Source: Oopsacas minuta (Eukaryota > Animalia > Porifera). From it: a stretch of DNA of 64,000 bases. The position numbers and the translations under genes are program-made. How positions within the stretch are numbered: position 1 is the first letter of the stretch; each line of letters opens with the position of its first letter. Below, one piece after another: positions 2,705 through 63,813 of this stretch. The notes below the pieces were generated by a model. It made no database searches, was not told where the DNA came from, and worked only from the letters and a program-made list of their open reading frames with translations. The DNA lies in NCBI GenBank assembly GCA_024704765.1, contig JAKMXF010000222.1, positions 186,001 through 250,000 on the forward strand, in the 5' to 3' direction.

Positions 2705-2709
2705 AAAAA
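2705..2709 (-). terminator. T5 run, putative Pol III terminator of unit A
   Basis: A5 on the + strand at the end of the terminal stem; same position in unit B. Confidence 0.55.
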
Positions 2710-2736
2710 GGAGGATTGCATATATCACAGATGAGT

Positions 2737-2810
2737 TGGTGTCTCTTCTAGGAATCGAACCTAGAGCTTATTTGCCCAGAAAATAAATCATACCATTAGA
2801 CTAAAAAGAC
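2737..2810 (-). tRNA. tRNA-Pro(UGG)-like cloverleaf with genome-encoded CCA, AU-rich, atypical C33
   Basis: GTCTTTT/AAGAGAC acceptor; D arm GTCT-AATGGTA-TGAT; anticodon arm TATTT-TCTGGGC-AAATA; T arm CTAGG-TTCGATT-CCTAG; 3' A-CCA. A-box TAGTCTAATGG and B-box GGTTCGATTCC. Confidence 0.75.
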
Positions 2811-2859
2811 GAAGTAGTGATATATTTAGCCTCCTTAAGTGTATACCAATTTTATTGTA

Positions 2860-2867
2860 CTTATATA
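2860..2867 (-). promoter_or_regulatory. TATA box (TATATAAG) upstream of unit A
   Basis: Lies 24 nt upstream of the AGGAGG 5' end; an identical octamer lies 22 nt upstream of unit B. Confidence 0.55.
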
Positions 2868-3038
2868 CTATGCAAGATTGTATTAATTAATAGAAAGGGT
2901 TACTTTCAATCACATTATTTCCAATAGAAATTAGAATTGTTTCATTATTTGTATATGCTATCACACAAGAAATTGGCCCTCTACCAACTTTCATTTATTA
3001 AATTCATACACAGGAAGACAAACGTATCGCGAAATAAT

Positions 3039-18278: not shown

Positions 18279-21200
18279 ATGAGTTCAGGATCTACAGAAA
18301 CATCTGAGCTACCTATAGAGCCAGTTTCCAAGCCTGTTGCCAAAACAATTTCAGAAATATCAGAATTCCTGACCCGATTTTCATCTTCAAAACGAGCTAA
18401 TGTATTCTACTGTAACATACAAAATGTTATTATGGATGCTCAGTATATTTTGTTGGATGGAGATTCGCTTCTGGTAGGTTTTATTTTATATTTATTTATT
18501 GTTGCCGTATTTTATAAATATCTCATTTCTAGATCGATTTTTTTGAATCTCCATACCTAGATTGGGAGCATGGAGGTCAGTTATTATCTCTAGTCTACCA
18601 AGTAGAACGATTCATTCATATTCTAAGTAAACACACGAAGTCTGTCCTGTGTATTACATTCTTCAAATGCATGCGTTCTATTTGGCTATCTGACCCTACG
18701 AAAATGCTTGCTAGAGAGTTGATTATAACTCATCTCAAGAATAATACAGACTTAACTCTACTCGATCAGTACAATTCATGGCTTGATCCTAAATTCAAAA
18801 AGTATACTTCTATCTACTACCCATATATAGCGTTTATAACTGATAAACATTATTCCACATTGAAGAACACAAGAAAGGGAGATATTTTGTTGTTATTCGA
18901 GTACCATTTGTTGTGTCAACACACGAATTGCGTATACATTGAAAGCGTTGTTGAGAATTTGATGCGATTATTCTGTTATATCGTAATAGACGTTGGTTTG
19001 GATAATCATTACGAGCCGTCTAATGCTGAAATAATAGTCCATCTTGAATGTTCATTCATTTCTCTCATTAGTGATGCATCTTACCAAGGATTTAGCGCAA
19101 ACTTGATTGAGATAGAAAAGTTGCTTTTCAAAGATTTCCAAGCATTTCCTAAATCAGAAAATCAGAATTGTAGAGATATCTTACTAATCCCAGCACTCAG
19201 GTACTTCCTACAATCTTCTGCCGATTCTGAACAAAAACTATTGATTTTATTCTATGTCAAAGTATTCATTATTCATCTCGAAATTTTGAAAAATTTCGAC
19301 ATTCAATCTCGAAATATATATCTTCCTGATGAGATAAATACTAATACTGATGATACACTGTCAAAACTCGCTATTATTCATTCTAATTTCTGCTTTGCAT
19401 TGCTCCTAATGCATCATGTAGCATACGGAAATGATTACCAATTTAATACTGAAGCTCCTCTCGGTAGTTTGCAACATCCTCTTTTCGCGTGTCAGTTGCC
19501 TGGAGATAGGACAGATATTTCTTCAAGTGTAAATTACCAACTTATTTGTGACCTATTCGATGGTAGGCTAATTACATACATTAGTGTATGTCTATTACAG
19601 AATATGAAGACAGTTAAGTCTCTTGATAGCTCAGGAATTGGCCTTGAAGTTGGTATCACTGATTCTATCTCAGTTTTCTGGAATAAACTACAACTAGATC
19701 CAGCTACAGAATTCTTTCCAATCGATTCTCCATGCACTGTGTCGTTCAAATATAACCTAATTACACTTCCTGGCCACTTTTCAATACCAAATGTTGAGAT
19801 TCCACTACACAACACTCGACTAGTCCATAAATTATCTGGTAATCTTAAGGAAGCGATGCAAGCCGAAAATGTGATAACCCAAGGGAATATTCGGTTCAAT
19901 GCGATATTTGTGGATTTCAAACGACATACGCTTAGTTCAGATAAATTTTTCCCATTATTAGGCAATATGCAGTCCAGATTAGGGTCTAAGGGTCTTAGAG
20001 AAGACGAAGAAGAACTCTCTAGAAAGAAGAGATTGAAAAGGTTACAGCAATATCATAAATTCATGACTTTCTATTCATCATCATTGAGCGGTGGTCTTGG
20101 TTGGAAGGAACCAATTATTGTTGAGAAAGTCCACGAAAAAGTTGTGGCGAAACAGAAAAGAGACAAAGCAAAGGCAGTTAAAGCGAAAATTATCTACGAA
20201 AAGCAACCCAGACAGAAATCACAAGCTCACAATAAAAAGGCAGCATCAATGAAAGATACAATAATTAAACAGAATATGGAGAAGCGAATTAATGAAATTG
20301 ATTCAAAGTATAATGAAGAATGGTCACGTTTGAAAGAGTCTCTAAAATCATCACTAGTAACTGATGGTCACATTCGACTTCTAGATGCGTTCATTATATC
20401 TTGTTCTTCAAGATCATATAGGTTGGAGGCACAATTACGAAAACTCCAATATTTGGTTATAATCTATCGAGAATGTAAAGACAAGGTAATCAATGTATGT
20501 AATATACTGCAGTTAGTTAATCATATCATAGACCAGAATTCTGGTGAAGAAGAGAAGGATTTTTCTAACAAGGCAAGGAAATGGGTAGTAACCGCCATTT
20601 TAGAGTTGGGATTCAACTTATACGCGAGTTTAGTTGCTTCGGAAATCAGCTATGATATCAATAATCTTATAGACCCCTCAGAAAACCATACAGATGAAGG
20701 AATACAAGAATTAACATGCATTGAGTTTCAATTGAAATACATGGGACATCTTATGCCAAGAGATGTAGGTAAGGAAAGAGATGATCGTGTCTCAAATTTC
20801 ATCCCTGACGACTGGCAGGTAAAGCTGTTAGATGCAGTTGACCGTAGAGAATCTGCTGTAATACATGCTCCAACTTCTTCAGGTAAGACGTTCATATCCT
20901 ACTACAATATGCTCAAGACGTTAAGAACTAATGACGAAGATTTAGTTGTATATGTATCACCGAGCAAAGAATTGATGAACCAGGTTGCAGCGTCCAATTA
21001 CGCGCAATTTGGGCATAAAACATACCAAAATCTCTCAATGACCTTATATGGCATACTCGCTCAAGGCTATGAAATGAAACCATTCCATAACCAAATCCTG
21101 ATCACATTACCAGAGCCATTCGAGTATTTATTACTGAGTACTGACCGTGAATGTATGGAGCTTGTGAAACGTATAAAATATGTTATTCTAGATGAAGTAC

Positions 21201-23692
21201 ATTGTATTAGTGCAGAAGAAAAGAGCGAATGTTGGGAGAGAATACTCTTATTGATACAGAGCCCTTTCTTAGCATTATCAGCTACAATTAGAAACGCATT
21301 AGAATTCACTAAATGGCTGAGAGGGGTCCAGAAGAGGAAATTTGAACTTAAAGAAGCAGGGAAACTTCCATCAGCAGGGATAGTGCATTTGATTTCACAT
21401 GAACAAAGATTTTCAGATCTTTCCAAATTTCGATTTGACAATAAAACAAACACACTGCATCATGTTCACCCTTGGACTTGTTTGAAATATGAACATCTAA
21501 AAACTTCAGGCTACCCTGAGGATCTCACATTGATAAGTGATGAGTGTTTGGGTGCGTATGAAGCACTGCGTTGGGTGTCGAGGGAATCTGAAGAGATCGA
21601 TGAAGATATCCTAAATGCAATACCTCCGTTAGATCCAAACTTTTTCTTCAGTGATATAAGAGAAATTACTAAAAATGACGTCAGGGATTACGATAAAGAA
21701 CTTTCTCAATTGTTATTAATGCTTGCGGAAAAAAGTTTTCAAAAGGAATATGAACAGCTGATGGAACGATTGAGGTCAGAGTTCAGCCAAGAACAGAAAC
21801 TAGCTATCACCACCACGCGAAAAGTTACGAAAATTCAAAGTGAAAAAGATATGGAAAAATTGAAGGAATCTCATGACTTGAAGTTTCTACGTGATTTAGA
21901 ATCCTCAAACAAACTTCCTTGTATAATATTTATCACAGACTTATATGATGTAGGCCGATTGGCTAAGGGACTACTTGGAGAACTCGAACATTTGGAAGAG
22001 ATAAAAACATCACTAGAGGGTGAAGACAAGGCAGTCAATAAAGAGAAAAGGATCAGAGAACTGACACGAGAACTTGATAAACTCCGCAAGCGATTAGATA
22101 CTAAATTAGGAGAAGAATCGAGAGATGAGATCGAAGCTCAAGTCCAAGGTTTATTAGACGAGTTAAGTGCTGTTCCTGAAGAGGACGAAGTTGATGAGGA
22201 TTACACATTTGCGAATCGTGGAATTCTCACCGCAAGTGACAAGGCTAAGTTAATCGATAACATGAGATATAAAGACAACATCTCTCTATTCAAACGATTA
22301 CTTGCACGCGGCATAATGATCCATCATGAAGAATTAACGAATAAAGAAAAACAATTTTCAGAAATTTCCTATCGCTGTGGTTATGTAAAAATTTTGATTT
22401 CAACAAGTACCCTTGCTTTGGGTATCCATATGCCTTGTAAGACAGTTGTATTCTACAAAGATTCTCTCTTCCTAACAGCACTACAATACAGACAAATGTC
22501 TGGTCGTGCTGGTCGAAGAGGTTATGATTTAATTGGTAATGTTATCTTCCATAACATTCATTCAGAAAAATTCAATTTACTCAATACAGCCCCTGTAGGG
22601 AGATTATACGGTAATCATATTTGGTCTACTTCAACTCTACTACGCTTGATAATTCTATTGAACGAGGAAGAAACGAAAGAGAACATTGGCATGGCTCTAA
22701 CCCTATTCCACAGACCATTCTTGTCATATATTGCTAGTGGTAATCATATTTCTGAGGTGATCAAATTCGAAGTATTATTTTCAGATCATTATCTAATACA
22801 AGAGGATTTCCTTGATGGTAATGGCGCACCAACTGTAGACGCAGCCTTGCTTTCGTACTTTTCATTCGCAGAGCCTTCAAACTTCTTTCTTCTCACTTTG
22901 CTACGTTCTGGGCTCTTAATCCGAATCGCTGATGGATATAATGATTCTAGTAGCGATCAGAAAAGGCAAATAAAGGAAAAATTAATGCTAGTGTATTGTC
23001 ATATATTATACTTGCAATATATCCCTCCTATGAAAATGTTATTATGCAATACTCTACCTGATTTACCAGATGAAATATCAAAAGTTTTTAATGAGCATAA
23101 TTTCAGGGCATTTTCTCTCTATCGCTATCATATCCAATCAATGTGCTGTTCACTCTGTATTAAAAATGAGCTAAAACACTTAAAACAACTACCAATGAGT
23201 AATATAGACTTTTCAAAGGAAGAGCCCATTCACAATCCTGTCGAAGATTCTCTAAACGATTCTCTTCAAAAATCTCGCCTCAGTAGTTACCTACTTTCAC
23301 CATTTATACAGAATAGTGGTCTTTCAGATGGTAGCGTTGCTTCAACATGCGCACTAATCAAATGCATACCTCCATCTATTGACATTGATACCAGCATACT
23401 TCCTATATCTCAATTCTGGAGTTTAAATCATACTGGCATCCCTAAAAACAACTACGTGTTTAAACTGTATACCGTTTCGGATATTTCACTGGAAGAAGTT
23501 TTAAATATCTCAGGGCTAACTGATCCTGATTTATTCAAGAATTTGAGGTATTTTTATGTAGCAATAAAGTCAGTTTATTATGTGGCAAAGCGTAAATTGC
23601 CTTTGGAGGATGATTTCAGAGCTGCTATGGATCATATTAATATGGACATCAAGTTATTAATGAAGAAAATGTATCGTGGTGTGAGAGTATAA
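18279..23692 (+). CDS. DDX60: DDX60-like Ski2-family DExD/H RNA helicase (2 exons; intron 18474-18532)
   Basis: PDDWQVKLLD, APTSSGKTF, ILDEVH, LALSATI, QMSGRAGRRGYD. Exon 1 (..DGDSLL) joins in frame via GT 18474 / AG 18532 to IDFFESPYLDWEHGGQ. Confidence 0.88.
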
Positions 23693-23944: not shown

Positions 23945-26900
23945 ATGGAGGATTTGGTTAGGAGGCTGATTAGCTCTGTGGGGGCCACACATATGTCTCC
24001 TCAACAATTTACATTTTTTAAATCATCAAAGGTGAAAGAAAGAGATATACCATTGGATAAAATATTAGCTATTCTTTCTGACGAAAATCCTAAATCTGAA
24101 GATTCTGATGATGAAGAAGGAATAAAGAGTGTTGACGATTCAGAATATAACTCTCTTAAAAGCTATATTTCTTATCTAATAACTAAATATTCCAATGGCA
24201 AATCCACCGAGCGTGTCGCGGAACTTTTCGAAGGTTTAGACAATATTAACACAATAAACTTACCCGTAAAACTAGGAATGTTGAAGTCATTGTTAATCCT
24301 CTCCGAATCAAGAGAAGGGAAAACAAATTATAGACGTCCAGAGGCTTTACCTTACAGTGATGGCACACAAGCATTTTCATTATACACTGATGATTATTTT
24401 GATAATCTTTCAGCAAAAAATCGAATGTTGTTTTCTAATACAAGTCAATTGGATAATGTTGGATCGAATCTTTCCTTGGACAGCGGATATTTTAGCCTAC
24501 CCACTTTGCCAACACCGAGATCAAGAAGTAGTGGTAAATGGAGCGAACTCAACGATCTAACTGATGTACAAACTATTTTATCAAAATATTCCGGTAATTA
24601 AGATTAGAAATAGGTAATGGAAAAATTCAAAATGACAATAAAATTTGAAATATGTTGAAACAAGTAGCAGATTGTCAGTTCAAAAATCGTATGCGAGATG
24701 CACATCTGTAGGTCACATTGAACCTGATGACAAAGTTTCAGCACTTAATCTTGAACGGTGTGGGCCGTGGGACCGTACACGGTAAAAACAAAAATCTGAA
24801 ATTACAACATGTAGCTGTCCCGATAGCATAGTAATTCTTGTTAACATTGTATATAGTTTTCAAAATATATACTCTACAGATATATCTCAATACAATTTAT
24901 CATCTGCATTTGCATCTGTACAGAAAGAAGCTAACCCAGAACGTTTCACAAAAAAGCGAGTAAAAAAGGAAGTACGTCCCAGATTGATATCAGAAACGCC
25001 TGAACTATACTCTGACTACATTATTTTCATAAAAAATAAAGATCTACTCGATCAAGCTATTCACCCAATCATTCACCCAGCACCAACTCCACACATAGAA
25101 CTATTCAATGCTGCAACCTACACATTACAAGGTATTGACTCTAATATTTGTTTGATGAATAGACGCTCTACGAATTTCAGAGTGAATGAGTATATTGCAT
25201 CAGATATGTACAGCACAACAACATTAGTTAATCTATTTAGAAGGTTTGCCAAAATCGGGAGTTGTTATTCGAGACTTAAAAAGCTCGCCGACTATCTACA
25301 AACTGGGGCAAACGGGACCATCGGTACAGCACTTGGCGTGGCCTTAAACGTAGTACTAAATCTATACCTGGTTAATATAATTAACTTCTCTCCACCCAAA
25401 GTAAATCCTGATGACGTAACACTACTACAACTTTACTCACATTTCCATCCATTATTCATATTAATGGAAGGCTTAGGGAAGATATTCAATTGTCTGAATA
25501 CGACAGATGATAAATGGGAGCCATACTTAATTTCCCTTCAACGAGGTCTTGATCTCTTGCTGTACATACAAGATTGCACTATAGGAATTGTTAACACAGA
25601 TCCATTGCATAGTGCCATGTGTTATTTGCTTAAACAGTCGAATATACCTCTGCTGGGCTATATACAACACTGGATATTCCATGGACAGGTAAGGATTGTA
25701 TTTTTCGATTTTATAAGCAAACTTACAGAAAATTTCTAGATTAAAGACCCAACGAATGAATTCGGGTTAGAAGCTAATGAAGATAAACTAGCTTGTAGAG
25801 ATGAAGAATTCTGGACGCGAGGGTTCACTTTCGGTGAGAATTTCAAGTTCCCTTGCTTCCTGGAGGGAATTGAAGACAAATTACTTCTCTGCGGTAAATC
25901 TCTAACCTTGTTGAGGATATGTGATCCTACACACTATTTGATAGCTAAACAACCTTTCTCTCAACTTAGAATGAAAGTGTGCCTCAACACACGAATTATC
26001 AGGGTACTTAGATATCATATTACAGCTCCTATAGGGAGATACATATCCTAATAGTATGGACAATACATGACAGCCAAGCTTCAAATTATCTGTGATTAAT
26101 TGGATGGATATATTTTGGGATAGTTTCAGAATTTTTTGGTTTTTAAAATTTCGGAAATTTTCCTTGCCAAATACAGGGATTTTTAATATTTTCCCTCTAT
26201 TCCACCCGAAATTTCCAGAAATATAGCAAAAATGGACCAATTTTCCCGGGAAGAGTTGGCAAGTATGTAATTTGTTTATTCCTTCTTTGCTAGGAGTACA
26301 TGGAGTACTGGGAAAACTACAAAGGCGAGATAACGAGCTATTTGGATAGGTTAAGACGTAGAGAAGAGGAAGAAAGGAAACAGATCGAAATAGACAGAGC
26401 TCAGGTTATAATTAAAAACAACGAAGAGAAGAGACGAAAAGCAAGAGTATACAAACAAGAGCAACAAAGAATGGCTACAGAACGTAAACAGAAATTAATG
26501 GCAGATTTACAAGTACAAATTGATGAGAAGAAAAGATTGAAAATTGAACAAAATGAAAAGGAGAGAGAACTTGATGCGTATTATGCAGCGAAATCTGGTA
26601 CGGTATTAGAAGCTGGGGTGGAAGCTTCTGGATTAGTTGAAATAGTTAAAAAAGAAATTGTAGAAGAATACGCAGCTTTGGAGCAGGAAGCTTTGGATAA
26701 ACGGAAAATTGCTGAAAAGAAAAAAATTGAATTAGCAGAGAAATTAGGTATCATTGAGACACAGCCAGAGACTGGGCTTGATTCACAAGAGAATACTCTA
26801 GAATTTTCAGACAATCCTGTTGAAAGCAGTCCAGTAGACCAAAAACCAATCGAAAGTCCTCCAAAGTTATTCTCAGCAGTTCCTGAACCTGAAATTTTGG

Positions 26901-28651
26901 TTGAAAAAGACTACACGGAAAATCTTGTAAAATCAAAAATAGATGAATATGAAATTATAGAATCAGACAAACCAGTAAAAGAAGGGTTGATACTACCTGA
27001 ACCAAATCCTGAGTCACCAGTCTCAAAAAAGGAACAAGAATCAAAAAAGGAACAAGAATCAAAAAAGGAACAAGAATCAAAAAAGGAACAAGAATCAAAA
27101 AAGGAACAAGAATCAAAGAAGGAACAAGAATCAAAAACTTTCAAAGACAATTTTTATTTTAAAACGCAACAAAAGTTTAAAGACTGTTCGCTCATGGATG
27201 AAAACCTAATTTTAGAAATTAGCGAGGCTATGGAAGACCAATTTAAGGATTTTTTCAAAGAACAAGAATCTTTCACAAACTACCCAATAGCTGAACTTGT
27301 AAAATGTTCATATTTCTTCCCAGTACATACACAAGCTAAAATCGTGAATATTTACGTTTTAGACTATTTCCGGAATCATTTAGAACTCGATAAGCATTTG
27401 ACTGTACTGAGGAAATTTGTAATGATGGAGAATGGAGAATTTGGCGATTCCCTTTCAATGCAGATTTTTAACCTATTATACATGCCAGATAGGCCGCAAT
27501 ACTTTTTCCATTTAAATCTAATCCTTGAAAGGGCATTGATCGCTTCGAGAATTAACAAACTGCCTCAAGTCGAGAACTTAGTTCTTGGCTATAAAGAACA
27601 GGAAAATATCTCAATTGCGAGTAGGAGATCTTCAGAAAAACAGCATTTAGTCACAGATGAATTATCTAATATTGTATTAGAGTATAATGTAGGATGGCCG
27701 ATAAACGTAGTGTTAAGAAATTTTACAGTTAAAACTTGCTATACGAAGATATTCAACTTTCTAATGCAAGTGAAGAGAGGTATTTGGTGCATGAATTCTG
27801 TGACCTCAGCTCTCAAGGCGATACAGGTATATTTTAATCTGGCCAATCTAGCCTTGTTCAATTCGATATAAGTAGAATGCAATATAACACAATATAATAT
27901 CAATGATACAATCAACTCCCGTTATATCGAAGCTCAAGGTACCGTGATAATAAAATGATATAGCCGCTGAGATTTATATTACTTTCACGATTTGGGGCCA
28001 CATTTGTACAATTCAGACTACGATATAAGCGGGTATTTTGATATCGTATTCGTGTTCGACATAACGGGAGTTGACCGTATAAGCCAAAATTTGAATTGGA
28101 TTCATACAAATTAACATTTTTAGGACAGGCTTGTGAACCCAAACCAACACGCTTTGAACCAGATAAAGTGTCTCCATCTCTACAGACATGAAATGCAACA
28201 TTTCGTAATAGTACTTCAAAACTACCTTGCTAACCAAGTGCTGAAAGTAAGCTGGGCATCTTTCCAGGCTCGCTTAGAAAAAATTGAAAATCTTGAACAG
28301 TTATACATGGAACATAGAAACTATGTGAATCAAATAATGATAAATATGGTGCTTAACATTAAAGGAAAGCCAATTTACAATTCCATAAAAAGGATATTCT
28401 TCTTCATTTTCAAATTCTACACACGAATACAGGAATCTCATTGGGAAGAAGACGAATCATCTTTGAATAATTTCGAACTTTTGAAAGAACAATATTTCCA
28501 ATACAAAAAGGTTACAAATTTCGTTTGCTCTTTAATAACGAAATTAATTAACAACGGCTATTCCTCCCAACTTGAATATTTTATTCTATTAATAGACTTT
28601 AATGATCGTTTTGCTAAAGAGAATGTTTCCAAACATCCTAGAGATTACTGA
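23945..28651 (+). CDS. TUBGCP6: Gamma-tubulin complex component 6, multi-exon (approximate exons 23945-24593, a small unresolved exon near 24680-24780, 24880-25688, 25740-~26004, 26294-27826, 28124-28651)
   Basis: GRIP motifs WIFHGQ|IKDPTNEF, LRKFVMMENGEFGDSL, LEYNVGWPINVVL..YTKIFNFLMQVKR, RHEMQHFV; large coiled-coil/repeat insertion typical of GCP6. Splice junctions near 24.6-24.9 kb not resolved. Confidence 0.82.
26030..26267. mobile_element. Family C element in a TUBGCP6 intron (right end clear, left end approximate)
   Basis: Ends in GAGTTGGCAAGTATG, shared with 8715 and 48278. Confidence 0.4.
27023..27136 (+). repeat. 18-bp coding tandem repeat x6 (SKKEQE)
   Basis: TCAAAAAAGGAACAAGAA repeated six times with a single substitution. 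Confidence 0.97.
27909..28077. mobile_element. MITE family A copy 3 (in the last TUBGCP6 intron)
   Basis: TA-CAATCAACTCCCGTTATATCG ... CGACATAACGGGAGTTGACCG-TA. Confidence 0.8.
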
Positions 28652-31696: not shown

Positions 31697-32971
31697 CTAT
31701 GCATAGTAGACAAGATTTGTTTTTTTCTTAGCCTGTACCTCCAAAATCCCTTCCATATAGTCTTCATGTGTTAAGTCAACAGCTCCACGTCTGAGAGCAA
31801 TCATACCAGCTTCAACACATACTGCTTTACACTGTGCACCGTTAAAATCGTCAGTACATCTGGCTAACTCTTCGAAATTAACGTTTTCATGCAGATTCAT
31901 TTTACGTGAATGTATTTGCATTATACGCGCTCGACCCTCTTCATTCGGCATTGGGAATTCTATTTTACGGTCTAAGCGTCCAGATCTTAGCAGGGCTGGG
32001 TCTAGGATATCAACTCTGTTGGTAGCAGCTATAACCTTTATACGATCATCTGAAGAGAAGCCATCTAATTGGTTTAATAGCTCCAACATTGTACGCTGTA
32101 CTTCTCTATCTCCTTCTTTCTCACTTGCAAACCGTTTGCTACCAACAGCATCTAACTCGTCAATGAATATAATCGCTGGTACTTTTTCTTTTGCGAGAGC
32201 AAACGCGTCTCTTACCAACTTCGCACCGTCTCCAATAAACATCTGCACTAACTGCGGACCTGCTAATTTCAAGAAAGCGGAATTAGTTTGAGCAGCACAA
32301 GCTCTGGCTAGTAGAGTTTTCCCAGTGCCAGGAGCTCCGTAGAGAAGCACACCTTTCGGTGGCTGAATACCGATATTATCGAATTTATCCTTATGAGTCA
32401 TCGGTAATACAATAGCTTCAATCAATTCTTTTATCTGTTTATCTAATCCTCCTATATCGTTATATCTCTCTGTGGGTTTTTCGTCTACTTCCATTGCTTT
32501 CACTCTTGAGTCGTATTCAGCTGGCAAGGTGTCTAGGATAAGGTATGAGTCTTTATTGACTCCCACGAGATCCCCTGGGTGTAGTTTTTCAGGGTCAACA
32601 AGACCAATAACAGGTAGGAAGTACGTCTGTCGGGTTGATGTTTTTATGACAGCGCATTTTCCTTTTCGCTGTGCATCTAGATCAATGTTTCCCCCTTCTT
32701 CTTCTTCGTCTTGTGGGTCCATATCAAGAATTTCAACGACAGTCGACACCAAGTAAGGCAACACTTTGAAAACTTTTATTTTCTCAGCGTTTTCCTTGAT
32801 TTTCTCATTCATTTGCGTCATTTCTGATGTTGCTGTCCTTATTTCAGATCGCATTATTCCAATCTCAGTGTTCAGTAGTCTAATTCTATGCTGGAGATCT
32901 TCAGTAGACATCCGTAATATGTCTTCATCTATCTCTGTGTCTTGGATAAGCTCGTCTTCAAGATTTGTCAT
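31697..32971 (-). CDS. PSMC3: 26S proteasome AAA-ATPase subunit 6A (Rpt5/TBP-1)
   Basis: [41 protein letters not shown]-terminal LVYYA HbYX motif. Confidence 0.98.
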
Positions 32972-35921: not shown

Positions 35922-36429
35922 CGTAATTACACTAATACCATAAATACAAATATTTTCAATTGAAATAATAAACGTATAGCTGTGCGTGATGTCATGGACA
36001 TGTAATATATGTAAAGCTCGATATTAGAACAGGCGCGGCAGGTCCGGCAAGCGCCGTACCTCAATATCCGCTCAAGCTGGCAAATTTCCTGTTTTTGAAT
36101 TACTTTTAGTACTAGTGAATTAATTAAATAGAGCAGTTGGGTATTATAACACTATTTACGTGTATAAACCAATTCCCCGCGACACTTAAGAGTACGTATA
36201 GAGATTTGCGTATTCGTAAGGCAATAAAGCAGTAATGTAAAATGTGTTCATATTGATCGTATTTAATTGGTACGTATTACGCTCGAACTGGGCATTTTCG
36301 GGTAAAAAGTGGAAAGTTGGAAAGTTAAAATTATACAGCCATAACTCCTTATACAAACTCAGTAGAACAGAATCAATGAATGCAAATTAGACAATTCCTT
36401 GTTACTCAATTTCGCCAATAATGTGTGAG

Positions 36430-36434
36430 AAAAA
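36430..36434 (-). terminator. T5 run, putative Pol III terminator of unit B
   Basis: A5 on the + strand at the end of the terminal stem. Confidence 0.55.
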
Positions 36435-36462
36435 GGAGGATTGCGTCTATCGCAAGAGGAGT

Positions 36463-36533
36463 TGCTTACCTGGGGATCGAACCCAGATTCTCACATGTGA
36501 AAGGTGTGCGTTATAACCATTAAACTAATAAGC
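36463..36533 (-). tRNA. tRNA-like cloverleaf with Glu(UUC) anticodon, 6-bp acceptor stem, no encoded CCA
   Basis: GCTTAT/GTAAGC acceptor; D arm GTTT-AATGGTTA-TAAC; anticodon arm CACAC-CTTTCAC-ATGTG (C31-A39 mismatch); T arm CTGGG-TTCGATC-CCCAG. A and B boxes intact. Confidence 0.68.
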
Positions 36534-36580
36534 GAAGTAGCGATAGACAATGCCTCCTAAAAATATTGGAATTGGATCTC

Positions 36581-36588
36581 CTTATATA
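36581..36588 (-). promoter_or_regulatory. TATA box (TATATAAG) upstream of unit B
   Basis: 22 nt upstream of the AGGAGG 5' end, matching unit A. Confidence 0.55.
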
Positions 36589-37746
36589 TAGCAATGGTTC
36601 ACTTTTATTTCTCTTTTGGTTGGATAATAAAACTCAAAGATAGTTGTATCCGGAGCTCATGTTACAGTGGGCACTACGGGGCGCTGATTCTAAATATGTA
36701 CTTAAGACACGTATACCCCCGAACGATATATCTGGTATATGTCATAATACGTAGACTTGAACTTATAGAAAAGTTCAAGCCTAAGTGTGTTATTATTTGT
36801 ATATGTAGTAATGAAAAAGCAAATTTATTTTCTGTGTGCTGCCTGATTGCAACAATGCAATGATTAGGAATTATGAGGTCAAGTCTATAGCTCTATACTG
36901 AGAATAGCAATTTTTGTATAAACTATAAAAAGCTTGGAAAATGAGGCTCTATATTTTACGGAACGACGGAAAGCACAACTTTCGCCTAGGCAGCATTACT
37001 TTTCAAACGAATTATTAGCTAAAATATTACAATAACAGGGCTCTCAACCTGAAAACTTTCGATATTCTGATATTCGTGAATATTCTTTGTTGTTCACCTC
37101 ATTTATCTACATAAAATATTTTGCGCTTTCGAGCTTTCAAGGGCGAATTATAAAATATTGGGATTGATGGCACGATTTTTATCGAATTAATTGACAATCA
37201 AGCGTTACTTGCTGTAATTATGTATTTTACTATATGATTAGAAGTGAGGGTGGAAATCTGCCTTGGATTATTGTCTAACTTGGTCGGCTTGATGCCGCAA
37301 TTCAGAGACCCCTTGTTCAAATGGAAGTTTGACCAATTTGCTCTATTTAACCCCTACTCAAACGCTGCGTGTGTGCTCAGCAATTTTACATTCCTCGCAT
37401 AGGTATGCTCACTTAACCCAATGAGCAGCCGTACTCTCTTCATTCTGCATTCGCACTCGACTTTTCAATACAGAATTATCCATTATAATATGTAATATTG
37501 GTGTTCAAGGAGCAGCCCTTCTTGAATGTTAGCACTTTCATGTGAAGAGTACCAGAAACTAAGCAAATTTTGGTGGCACACAAATGTACGGCGGCACACC
37601 GGTTGATGACATCGCATTATCATGTATGACTATTTCATATACACATAGTTTTCAAAATATTCGGCAAAAATTGAGACATGTTTCTGCTAAACTGTATAAT
37701 TACTAAATATATTATGAGTATTTAGATTTACTTCAAGACGAGAAAG

Positions 37747-47989: not shown

Positions 47990-48278
47990 TATATATTCCC
48001 GAGATTTATTTACTAAATCTCGGTATATTCGACAATTCCCTGGATTTCTAAGTATTACGTCCATAAATAGAAGTTTTAGCTATTATTTGGGAAATGTACA
48101 GAAATTTGTAGTACAGTAGAATCTCGTTAATACGTACAAGAGCTGAAGTTGTGTACTTCTTATCCGGAAATTCGTATTAACGAAGTTCTACTGTATTTCC
48201 CAGGATTATCAAATGTGTCCCTGTATTTCCTGTAAAACCCCGGCATAATCCAGAGATTCAGGAGCGTTGGCAAGTATG
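47990..48278. mobile_element. Family C element (left end approximate) carrying a nested family B MITE
   Basis: Right end GTTGGCAAGTATG at 48266-48278; internal hairpin CCGAGATTTA/TAAATCTCGG. Confidence 0.4.
48114..48193. mobile_element. MITE family B (TA-CAGTAGAA TIR)
   Basis: TA-CAGTAGAATCTCGTTAATACG ... CGTATTAACGAAGTTCTACTG-TA. Confidence 0.85.
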
Positions 48279-63712: not shown

Positions 63713-63813
63713 GGATTTAATATTTCAAACCTGTTCTGGTGGTTTATTCGTGTTTTTTGGAGAAACCCCAAAACACGAATAAACCACCAGAACAGGTTTG
63801 AAATATTAAATCC
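63713..63813. repeat. Perfect 44-bp inverted repeat with a 13-nt loop
   Basis: 63713-63756 is the exact reverse complement of 63770-63813; loop TTGGAGAAACCCC. Confidence 0.97.

Follow-up and report, generated by a model that had tools for sequence, protein, structure and literature searches.

A small family of putative RNA polymerase III genes with a hybrid promoter, a tRNA-derived core and a vault RNA-like terminal handle

Vault- and Y-type RNAs, transcripts of RNA polymerase III (Pol III) in certain ribonucleoprotein particles (RNPs), were mostly unrecorded beyond deuterostomes and a few further lineages when they were surveyed in 2009; such RNAs evolve too fast for homology searches, and their partner proteins are widespread (PMC2655684, PMC2770079). 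Vault RNAs in particular were known at that time only from deuterostomes and two lophotrochozoan lineages, and searches in Trichoplax and schistosomes, organisms with the major vault protein, were unsuccessful (PMC2655684, PMC2770079). The human vault RNA consists of a 7-bp outer helix (P1), an internal loop (CUUUA/GCUCU), a second helix (P2), the motif UUACUUCGA, a B box, the return strands P2' and P1', and a U-run (PMC10087102). Vault genes occur as a triple gene repeat and have type 2-hybrid promoters, in which internal A and B boxes are combined with upstream elements, an arrangement also described for 7SL and BC200 genes (PMC10498592). Here, two loci with a comparable layout, units A and B, are described from a 64,000-nucleotide stretch of contig JAKMXF010000222.1 (positions 186,001 to 250,000; this whole stretch is called the window, and all positions are counted from its first letter). 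In each unit, a tRNA-shaped core is enclosed by a paired terminal handle and preceded by a TATA box.

Units A and B belong to a family of 20 members in seven genomes, which is very probably a real family of Pol III RNA genes with the fold described below. The best explanation, to which a rough probability of 0.45 is given, is that its members encode a vault-like RNP RNA with a hybrid promoter and a tRNA-derived core, in a small family whose genomic positions are conserved. A preliminary description of the window had proposed an RNA family with a TATA box, a T-run terminator, internal A and B boxes and a terminal helix selected for pairing; the compensatory changes found among the 20 members argue that this proposal was sound. 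The parts of the two units are listed below, with bit scores from the family covariance model (R1) or from Rfam.

Unit A
2894-2901, minus strand: upstream box AACCCTTT, at -66 from the predicted start, resembling a proximal sequence element (putative function, from position only)
2860-2867, minus strand: TATA box TATATAAG, at -32, 24 nt before AGGAGG
2705-2835, minus strand: predicted transcript of 131 nt, from AGGAGG to the T-run; R1 score 134 bits
2830-2835, minus strand: 5' strand of outer helix P1, AGGAGG, partner of 2709-2714
2826-2829, minus strand: 5' side of the internal loop, CUAA (CTAA in DNA), identity 0.91-1.00 in type A
2817-2825, minus strand: 5' strand of helix P2, ATATATCAC, partner of 2720-2728
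2811-2816, minus strand: single-stranded junction UACUUC (TACTTC), invariant in 19 of 20 members
2737-2810, minus strand: tRNA-shaped core with encoded ACCA end; ARAGORN Pro-TGG, Rfam tRNA 49.2 bits
2774-2780, minus strand: anticodon loop UCUGGGC, with C at position 33
2729-2736, minus strand: 3' junction ACUCAUCU (given as ACTCATCT in the element table), family identity 0.32, length variable
2720-2728, minus strand: 3' strand of helix P2, GTGATATAT, partner of 2817-2825
2715-2719, minus strand: 3' side of the internal loop, GCAAU, identity 0.79-0.82 in types A and B
2709-2714, minus strand: 3' strand of P1, CCTCCT
2705-2708, minus strand: T-run terminator TTTT

Unit B
36615-36621, minus strand: upstream box AACCAAA, at -63
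36581-36588, minus strand: TATA box TATATAAG, at -30
36430-36558, minus strand: predicted transcript of 129 nt; R1 score 124 bits
36553-36558 with 36434-36439, minus strand: P1
36549-36552 and 36440-36444, minus strand: internal loop
36540-36548 with 36445-36453, minus strand: P2, GTCTATCGC/GCGATAGAC, 9 bp
36535-36539, minus strand: UACUU
36462-36534, minus strand: tRNA-shaped core; Rfam tRNA 49.6 bits, C1-A72 mismatch
36497-36503, minus strand: anticodon loop CUUUCAC
36454-36461, minus strand: 3' junction
36430-36433, minus strand: T-run

Reading of the minus strand and alignment of the two loci gave exactly the order of elements that had been put forward for 2705-2867 and 36430-36588; in unit A, for instance, the cloverleaf is followed by ACC-AACTCATCT, GTGATATAT, GCAAT, CCTCCT and TTTT. 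The three double substitutions claimed for the 9-bp stem between A and B are likewise present. For the cores, the A and B boxes stood, and two small corrections were needed, one in each unit: canonical tRNA numbering of unit B begins at the last C of TACTTC, which leaves the C1-A72 mismatch and effectively a 6-bp acceptor stem, and the C at position 33 of unit A replaces a universal U. ARAGORN called Pro-TGG at 2737-2810 and Glu-TTC at 36461-36534 and found no third tRNA in the 64-kb window. The pattern AGGAGG-N(10-20)-TACTTCG occurs twice in the window, compared to 0.02 expected occurrences, and the 3' 15-mer GCAATCCTCCTTTTT has exact copies at units A and B only. Therefore, the shared frame is far beyond chance. 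With R1 and filters off, no further copies were found in the window, the next scores being at most 15 bits.

Several technical observations were made alongside these searches. Two intergenic stretches, 48111-48196 and 63721-63805, gave weak R1 matches (13-15 bits) on both strands, and are thus probably hairpins or palindromes rather than family members. An Rfam run over the whole window at the gathering threshold with default filters lost the core of unit A, yet this core reaches its 49.2 bits when scored locally; default Rfam filters lose AT-rich tRNA-like genes in this window. Additionally, one Logan contig (run X3) ends at window position 2914 with AGATGTGTATAAGAGACAG, which we take to be the Tn5/Nextera mosaic-end adapter, carried over into assembled contigs.

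The relatives are six genomes (or more) in ENA long-read metagenome assemblies, with 100-470x coverage and 55-92% protein identity, of which the PUS3 and Mon2 regions were compared (loci L001-L008 and L015-L019). These regions hold 18 members beyond units A and B; a covariance-model search, which had been suggested as a check on the two original loci, was made with R1, built from 14 members, and recovers all 20 at 83-134 bits. The members occupy two gene-order slots. Slot A lies between a caspase-like gene and PUS3, and one or two framed elements are present just upstream of PUS3 in all six relatives (type A, 10 members with unit A). Slot B lies between HPC2/ubinuclein and Mon2, and holds three elements in each of three relatives (type B, 10 members with unit B). 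Where the HPC2-Mon2 gene order is broken (L015 and L017), no framed element was found.

Copy number was assessed by matching contigs of DNA from the source sample to the units at 80% identity. Unit A recovered its own locus only and is thus single-copy at this level (at least 80% identity), and unit B has at least two further paralogues, or approximately three copies at 80% identity or more. Similarity among the unit B paralogues starts and stops exactly at 36430 and 36558/9, outside of which the flanks are unrelated; each paralogue has its own TATA box at approximately -30, and the differences are clustered at the anticodon loop (36496-36504). The few copies, together with similarity limited to the predicted transcript, indicate a small family of old gene duplicates. 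The earlier term 'dispersed' is therefore an overstatement for a family that is small and keeps its positions.

Three further observations concern the loci of relatives and other metagenomes. L018:8946-9066 (plus strand) is a decayed member, in which the handle is intact, the T-loop and B box are deleted and few other changes are present; it scores 83 bits with R1, compared to 110-134 in other members, is not called by ARAGORN, and shows how genuine decay looks in this family. A long palindromic stretch, L016:8305-8576, lies between the inverted type B copies L016a (plus strand) and L016b (minus strand); it gave weak matches to plant microRNA-precursor models on both strands, and is probably the centre of an inverted duplication. 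Scanning JGI metagenome contigs for the frame pattern gave six chance matches only, in GC-rich bacterial coding DNA and with no tRNA.

The proposed fold was evaluated by pairing and covariation. Standard pairs fill 93.4% of the pair cells in the 20-member alignment, compared to 42-60% when partners are slid by 1-3 columns. Compensatory changes on both sides occur in 18 of 36 pairs, and none of 500 shuffles reached the observed values; the alignment was fitted to the structure and the sequences are related, so that these counts lean towards the structure, and both the slid-column controls and MAFFT-based counts agree with them. Pairing was also examined in a 14-member version and with RNAalifold. 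In P1, which is 97.5% paired, five pairs are invariant and the first is AU in 14 members and GC in three; this switch indicates that the helix extends to the predicted first base. In P2, six of nine pairs have compensatory changes and 95% of cells are paired. The acceptor, D, anticodon and T stems are all kept, with double changes in all five anticodon-stem pairs. Thus, the comparisons show the predicted fold to be under selection for RNA pairing. The members have in common a handle made up of the 6-bp outer helix, the CUAA/GCAAU internal loop, the 9-bp covarying helix and UACUUC, and, across the family, a complete cloverleaf followed by a T-run. Identity is 0.8-1.0 in P1, the 5' internal loop, UACUUC, the D-arm and the T-arm, 0.44-0.57 in the anticodon arm, and 0.32 in the 3' junction.

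Promoter distances were measured in 14 members from the first base of (A/T/G)GGAGGC. A TATA box is present at -28 to -32 in 13 of these (L005b has TATTAAA instead). Twelve of the 14 have an A(A/C)CC(C/A)WW box at -62 to -66, from which the sequences of L006a and L016c depart by one base. Over all 20 members, the counts are 19 for the TATA box and 18 for the upstream box, the remaining two members having near variants of the latter. The genes end in a run of three to six T, and the A and B boxes lie within the D- and T-arms of the core. These distances show a putative promoter with fixed geometry across the family, and its layout is predicted to be the Pol III type 2-hybrid arrangement. A transcript of 125-131 nt is inferred from the promoter geometry and the covariation of P1, and the promoter spacing is consistent with the previously suggested start at the first base of AGGAGG. 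The window and 139 kb of related loci contain no other type 3 Pol III genes (U6 and similar).

These features suggest how the genes might work. Pol III would transcribe from a type 2-hybrid promoter, composed of the box at approximately -64, the TATA box at approximately -30 and the internal A and B boxes. Transcription would begin at the first base of (A/G)GGAGG and stop in the T-run after CCUCC(U/C), such that the ends of the transcript would pair. The handle (P1, a 4x5-nt internal loop, P2 and UACUUC) would close the tRNA-derived cloverleaf, with the stems maintained and the anticodon loop left free. Proteins may recognise P1, the internal loop, UACUUC and the UUU-OH end, in which case La and a vault- or TROVE-type partner would be the candidates. 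The internal promoter and a compact fold would come from the tRNA-shaped core, whose variable anticodon loop would resemble the central domain of vault RNAs, which is likewise variable.

The anticodon loop differs from the rest of the core in that its identity is not kept between orthologous positions. The anticodons called in slot A are TGG (in three lineages), GTG, TTG, GCA, TAG and TAA, with two loops unassignable, and those in slot B are TTC (three), GTC, GCT (two), GCA, GTG and CCT. Orthologous elements would accordingly be assigned to Pro, His, Gln, Cys and Leu in slot A, and to Glu, Ser, Asp, Arg and Cys in slot B. Approximately half of the loops break universal rules, with C33 (unit A), A33, a pyrimidine at 37, 6-nt loops or broken stem ends. 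In 13 pairwise comparisons, the anticodon arm has diverged as much as the flanking intergenic DNA (Fisher p of at least 0.18), and the remainder of the RNA retains an identity of 0.72-0.97. Faster-than-neutral change of the anticodon arm was considered and rejected, as its divergence equals that of the flanks. The loop thus appears to have been released from constraint, without diversifying selection. Neither a conserved anticodon at orthologous positions nor a consistent set of U33, purine 37 and 7-nt loop was observed. Since the anticodon varies between orthologues, is often non-canonical and diverges like the flanks, decoding is unlikely, and the members are probably not decoders. For the same reasons, two previously suggested roles are unlikely, namely the import of particular tRNAs into organelles and a decoy of given specificity for synthetases.

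Types A and B differ both in the handle (P2 sequence and internal loop) and in the core. In L008a, the most distant member of type A, the acceptor stem, the 3' end and P2 resemble type B. Joint differences with such an intermediate favour the duplication and co-divergence of one ancestral gene, which would be simpler than the swapping of tRNAs into a fixed carrier. The 'interchangeable tRNA cargo' of the preliminary description is hence not supported: handle and core diverge jointly in lineages A and B, and the cores differ chiefly in the anticodon arm, which drifts at the neutral rate. The type A core presumably derives from tRNA-Pro(UGG), and the type B core we take to be tRNA-Glu- or tRNA-Val-like.

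Among described RNAs, vault RNA is the closest match found, and it was missing among the roles first proposed. In Rfam scans with an E cut-off of 10 for Vault and Y_RNA (5 in one L019 scan), the full Vault model (RF00006, positions 1-99) was aligned on the predicted transcript boundaries in eight of 14 members tested, with the following scores.

L016b: 25.7 bits, E 0.0055
L019b: 25.1 bits, E 0.0079
L016a: 23.4 bits
Unit B: 22.2 bits, E 0.0073, aligned at 36429-36559
L019a: 20.3 bits
L001a: 19.7 bits
L016c: 17.1 bits
Unit A: 11.8 bits, aligned at 2706-2834

No non-tRNA Rfam family besides Vault recurs in sensitive scans of the members. Printed sequences and structures guided by selective 2'-hydroxyl acylation analysed by primer extension were used to compare the family with human vault RNA (PMC10087102). 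The outer helix has 7 bp in human vault RNA and 6 bp in the family, the internal loop is CUUUA/GCUCU in the former and CUAA/GCAAU in the latter, and a second helix is present in both (9 bp in the family). The motif after P2 is UUACUUCGA in human vault RNA and UACUUCG in the family; both share U(U)ACUUCG after a second helix of approximately 9 bp. On the 3' side, the two are alike in their B box GGUUCGA, return strands and U-run. Vault RNAs are 88-141 nt long, compared to a predicted 125-131 nt here. Similarly, the predicted promoter, with A and B boxes, upstream elements and T-run, has the layout of the vault type 2-hybrid promoter, and a terminal helix, internal loop and second helix surround a variable centre, as in vault RNA. 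Both form small clustered families with conserved positions, and three type B copies are present per cluster in three relatives. The centres differ: the family has a complete cloverleaf with its own acceptor stem, whereas in vertebrate vault genes the A box lies in a P2 strand and there is no cloverleaf. A vault RNA has reportedly been indicated for trypanosomes, in the title of one study (PMC12547018).

Several points weigh against a vault-like assignment. All of the Vault scores (11.8-25.7 bits) are below the gathering score of 34, no Vault match was obtained in the other six of the 14 members tested (L001b, L007a, L007b and L019c among them), and the scores derive partly from features of any stem-closed tRNA gene, namely a B box, a U-run and two helices. 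The vertebrate A box within P2 and the absence of a vertebrate cloverleaf make homology to vault RNA not straightforward. A well-formed cloverleaf between single-stranded linkers should also be a good substrate for RNase P and RNase Z, which favours processing. Finally, some constraint on the anticodon loop may persist, since UGG is kept in unit A, L007b and L008a and UUC in unit B, L016c and L019c. The genes for MVP, TEP1 and Ro60 were not found in the 64-kb window, which covers only part of the genome.

Taken apart, the elements of the vault-like reading differ in strength. That the full-length transcript acts as a vault-like RNP RNA, or at least works in the manner of vault or Y RNAs, is a tentative suggestion drawn from the comparison as a whole. 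True homology to vault RNA is rather doubtful. It is also doubtful that the family represents the vault RNA of an early-branching or unannotated animal lineage in an ancestral state, in which the handle still encloses a full cloverleaf. As a structured RNA family of an animal lineage, with a fixed terminal stem around a tRNA-shaped core, it looks new. The shared layout places it as a probable further variant of the Pol III panhandle RNAs, with vault RNA as its nearest relative or analogue.

Y RNAs and the bacterial YrlA RNAs are also panhandle RNAs of the Pol III kind, in which the terminal stems are conserved and the loops vary, as in the family, and YrlA combines a protein-binding stem with a tRNA-like module in the same way. 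The closing stem of YrlA, however, replaces the anticodon stem, whereas that of the family extends from the acceptor end. No Y_RNA match was obtained at the E cut-off in Rfam scans of the members, and a sequence check agreed with the earlier statement that the Ro-binding motif GGUCCGA (GGTCCGA in DNA) is absent from both units.

Of the alternatives to a vault-like RNP RNA, a processing handle survives best, although it is unlikely. RNase P and RNase Z or exonucleases would excise the cloverleaf, and the released pieces would be functional: a tRNA-like small RNA, an imperfect 15-bp duplex between a 25-nt leader and a U-tailed trailer of approximately 30 nt, or both. The core would then be mainly a cleavage signal, as in mascRNA from MALAT1 or in viral tRNA-microRNA precursors. 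The conserved parts (acceptor stem, T-arm and D-arm) are exactly those required by RNase P and RNase Z, the anticodon arm, dispensable for both enzymes, is drifting, and the core boundaries match mature tRNA ends. Additionally, the linkers between cloverleaf and P2 are unpaired (5-6 nt on the 5' side and 3-12 nt on the 3' side; L007b, L007a and winA, that is, unit A), and the 5' end AGGAGGC is invariant, like the end of a guide RNA. In most type A members, however, the acceptor stem is followed by an encoded ACCA. As RNase Z is inhibited by CCA at positions 74-76, a clean 3' release is doubtful for these members. In P2, pairing is kept by covariation and the sequence is not, which would be unlike a mature guide among small RNAs, and a Pol III transcript would carry a 5' triphosphate, which is a poor substrate for Argonaute loading. 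The mascRNA and MEN-beta elements (RF01684), which act as an RNase P/Z signal with no decoding, are similar in that they are tRNA-shaped and have an unconserved anticodon loop. They are located at the 3' end of long Pol II transcripts, whereas each member of the family would be a Pol III gene of its own, with a terminal helix. An RF01684 match was obtained for L007a only, at 15.5 bits compared to a threshold of 42.5.

It is improbable that the members are instead precursors of true tRNAs, with a long paired leader and trailer and an external promoter, perhaps as a general architecture in these genomes and with anticodon switching among redundant copies. They share a cloverleaf, a T-run terminator and the A and B boxes with cytosolic tRNA genes (RF00005). 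Against the Rfam tRNA threshold of 29 bits, scores of 36.2-53.3 bits were obtained for 17 of the 20 cores (L005a, L005b and L018c were called by ARAGORN only and are outside this count), and approximately half of the anticodon loops are canonical, with UGG and UUC each retained in three members. All tRNAs called by ARAGORN in approximately 330 kb from the seven genomes are framed and none is unframed; this absence is uninformative, since the expected number of ordinary tRNA genes in the non-redundant sequence covered is only about 0.5. Unlike cytosolic tRNA genes, the family has a conserved 25-nt leader that pairs with a trailer of approximately 30 nt, an external box and TATA, an unconserved anticodon and AU-rich acceptor stems, and type A encodes CCA. 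One body carries many anticodons at orthologous slots, with the non-canonical loops noted above, the sequence of the handle is conserved beyond what a processing leader needs, and copy number is low. Cytosolic animal tRNAs are highly conserved, unlike the AU-rich acceptor stems found here.

A role at the DNA level, as a chromatin boundary between genes that binds TFIIIC and TFIIIB and makes a functionless RNA, is very improbable. Such an element could account for the conserved positions between the same protein genes and for the A box, B box and TATA box being the most conserved parts, but the compensatory changes in P1, P2 and the acceptor, anticodon and T stems indicate selection on RNA pairing, and UACUUC and the internal loop are conserved outside known promoter elements. 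The weakest alternative is a tRNA-derived mobile element, dead or active, such as a short interspersed element (SINE) or a miniature inverted-repeat transposable element (MITE) with AGGAGG/CCTCCT terminal repeats: the tRNA-derived core, the inverted terminal sequences, the several copies per genome and paralogues that are alike only inside the unit would fit it, but the same two slots are filled in seven genomes, including those with PUS3 only 55-76% identical, unit A is single-copy and unit B has about three copies whose TATA boxes are kept at -30, pairing is under selection, and L018:8946-9066 contrasts as true decay, such that a small family of old duplicates at conserved positions largely rules out the SINE or MITE, dead copies of which the preliminary description had itself named as an alternative.

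The window is gene-dense and intron-poor, with 36% G+C and animal-type genes. These include genes for a caspase-domain protein, PUS3, RIC1, INTS1, enkurin, enolase, a DDX60-like helicase, GCP and tubulin, as well as a proteasome ATPase, ubinuclein/HPC2, Mon2 and LIM, RGS, TTLL and EGF proteins. The closest named PUS3 proteins are from octocorals (47-48% identity), and the closest named enolases are from crinoids, hemichordates, sponges and cnidarians (76-78%). Two other origins of the window were considered, nuclear DNA of yeast and a mitochondrial insert carrying ATATAAGTA, the mitochondrial promoter of yeast; both were rejected on account of genes of animal type (INTS1, SLBP, KRIT1, Ig, adhesion GPCR and RGS), together with the enolase relatives. 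Introns are nonetheless present in this compact genome: a gamma-tubulin complex gene extends over three open reading frames (24984-28651, plus strand). The proteasome ATPase is a single open reading frame in the window (31697-32971), and is split by a gap of approximately 295 bp in L016:3532-5058 (minus strand). The region 18671-23692 (plus strand) encodes a helicase of 1673 amino acids whose PIN-like N-terminal domain is of the DDX60 type; in vertebrates, DDX60 is an RNA helicase with an antiviral role.

Overall, the family is a well-supported candidate for the class of vault- and Y-type Pol III RNAs, on account of its 20 members, their covariation and the fixed geometry of the predicted promoter, and R1 provides a covariance model that is ready for further searches. 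Its origin is unusually legible, as the core is still a full tRNA cloverleaf. If the family is a true vault RNA, then vault RNAs would have arisen from a tRNA gene that gained paired leader and trailer extensions, and the family would provide a search model for non-bilaterian animals, from which no vault RNA is known. If it is not, it would represent a new tRNA-derived structured RNA, whose anticodon loop has been freed from decoding. In either case, tRNA finders will annotate such genes as tRNAs with wrong and unstable anticodons.

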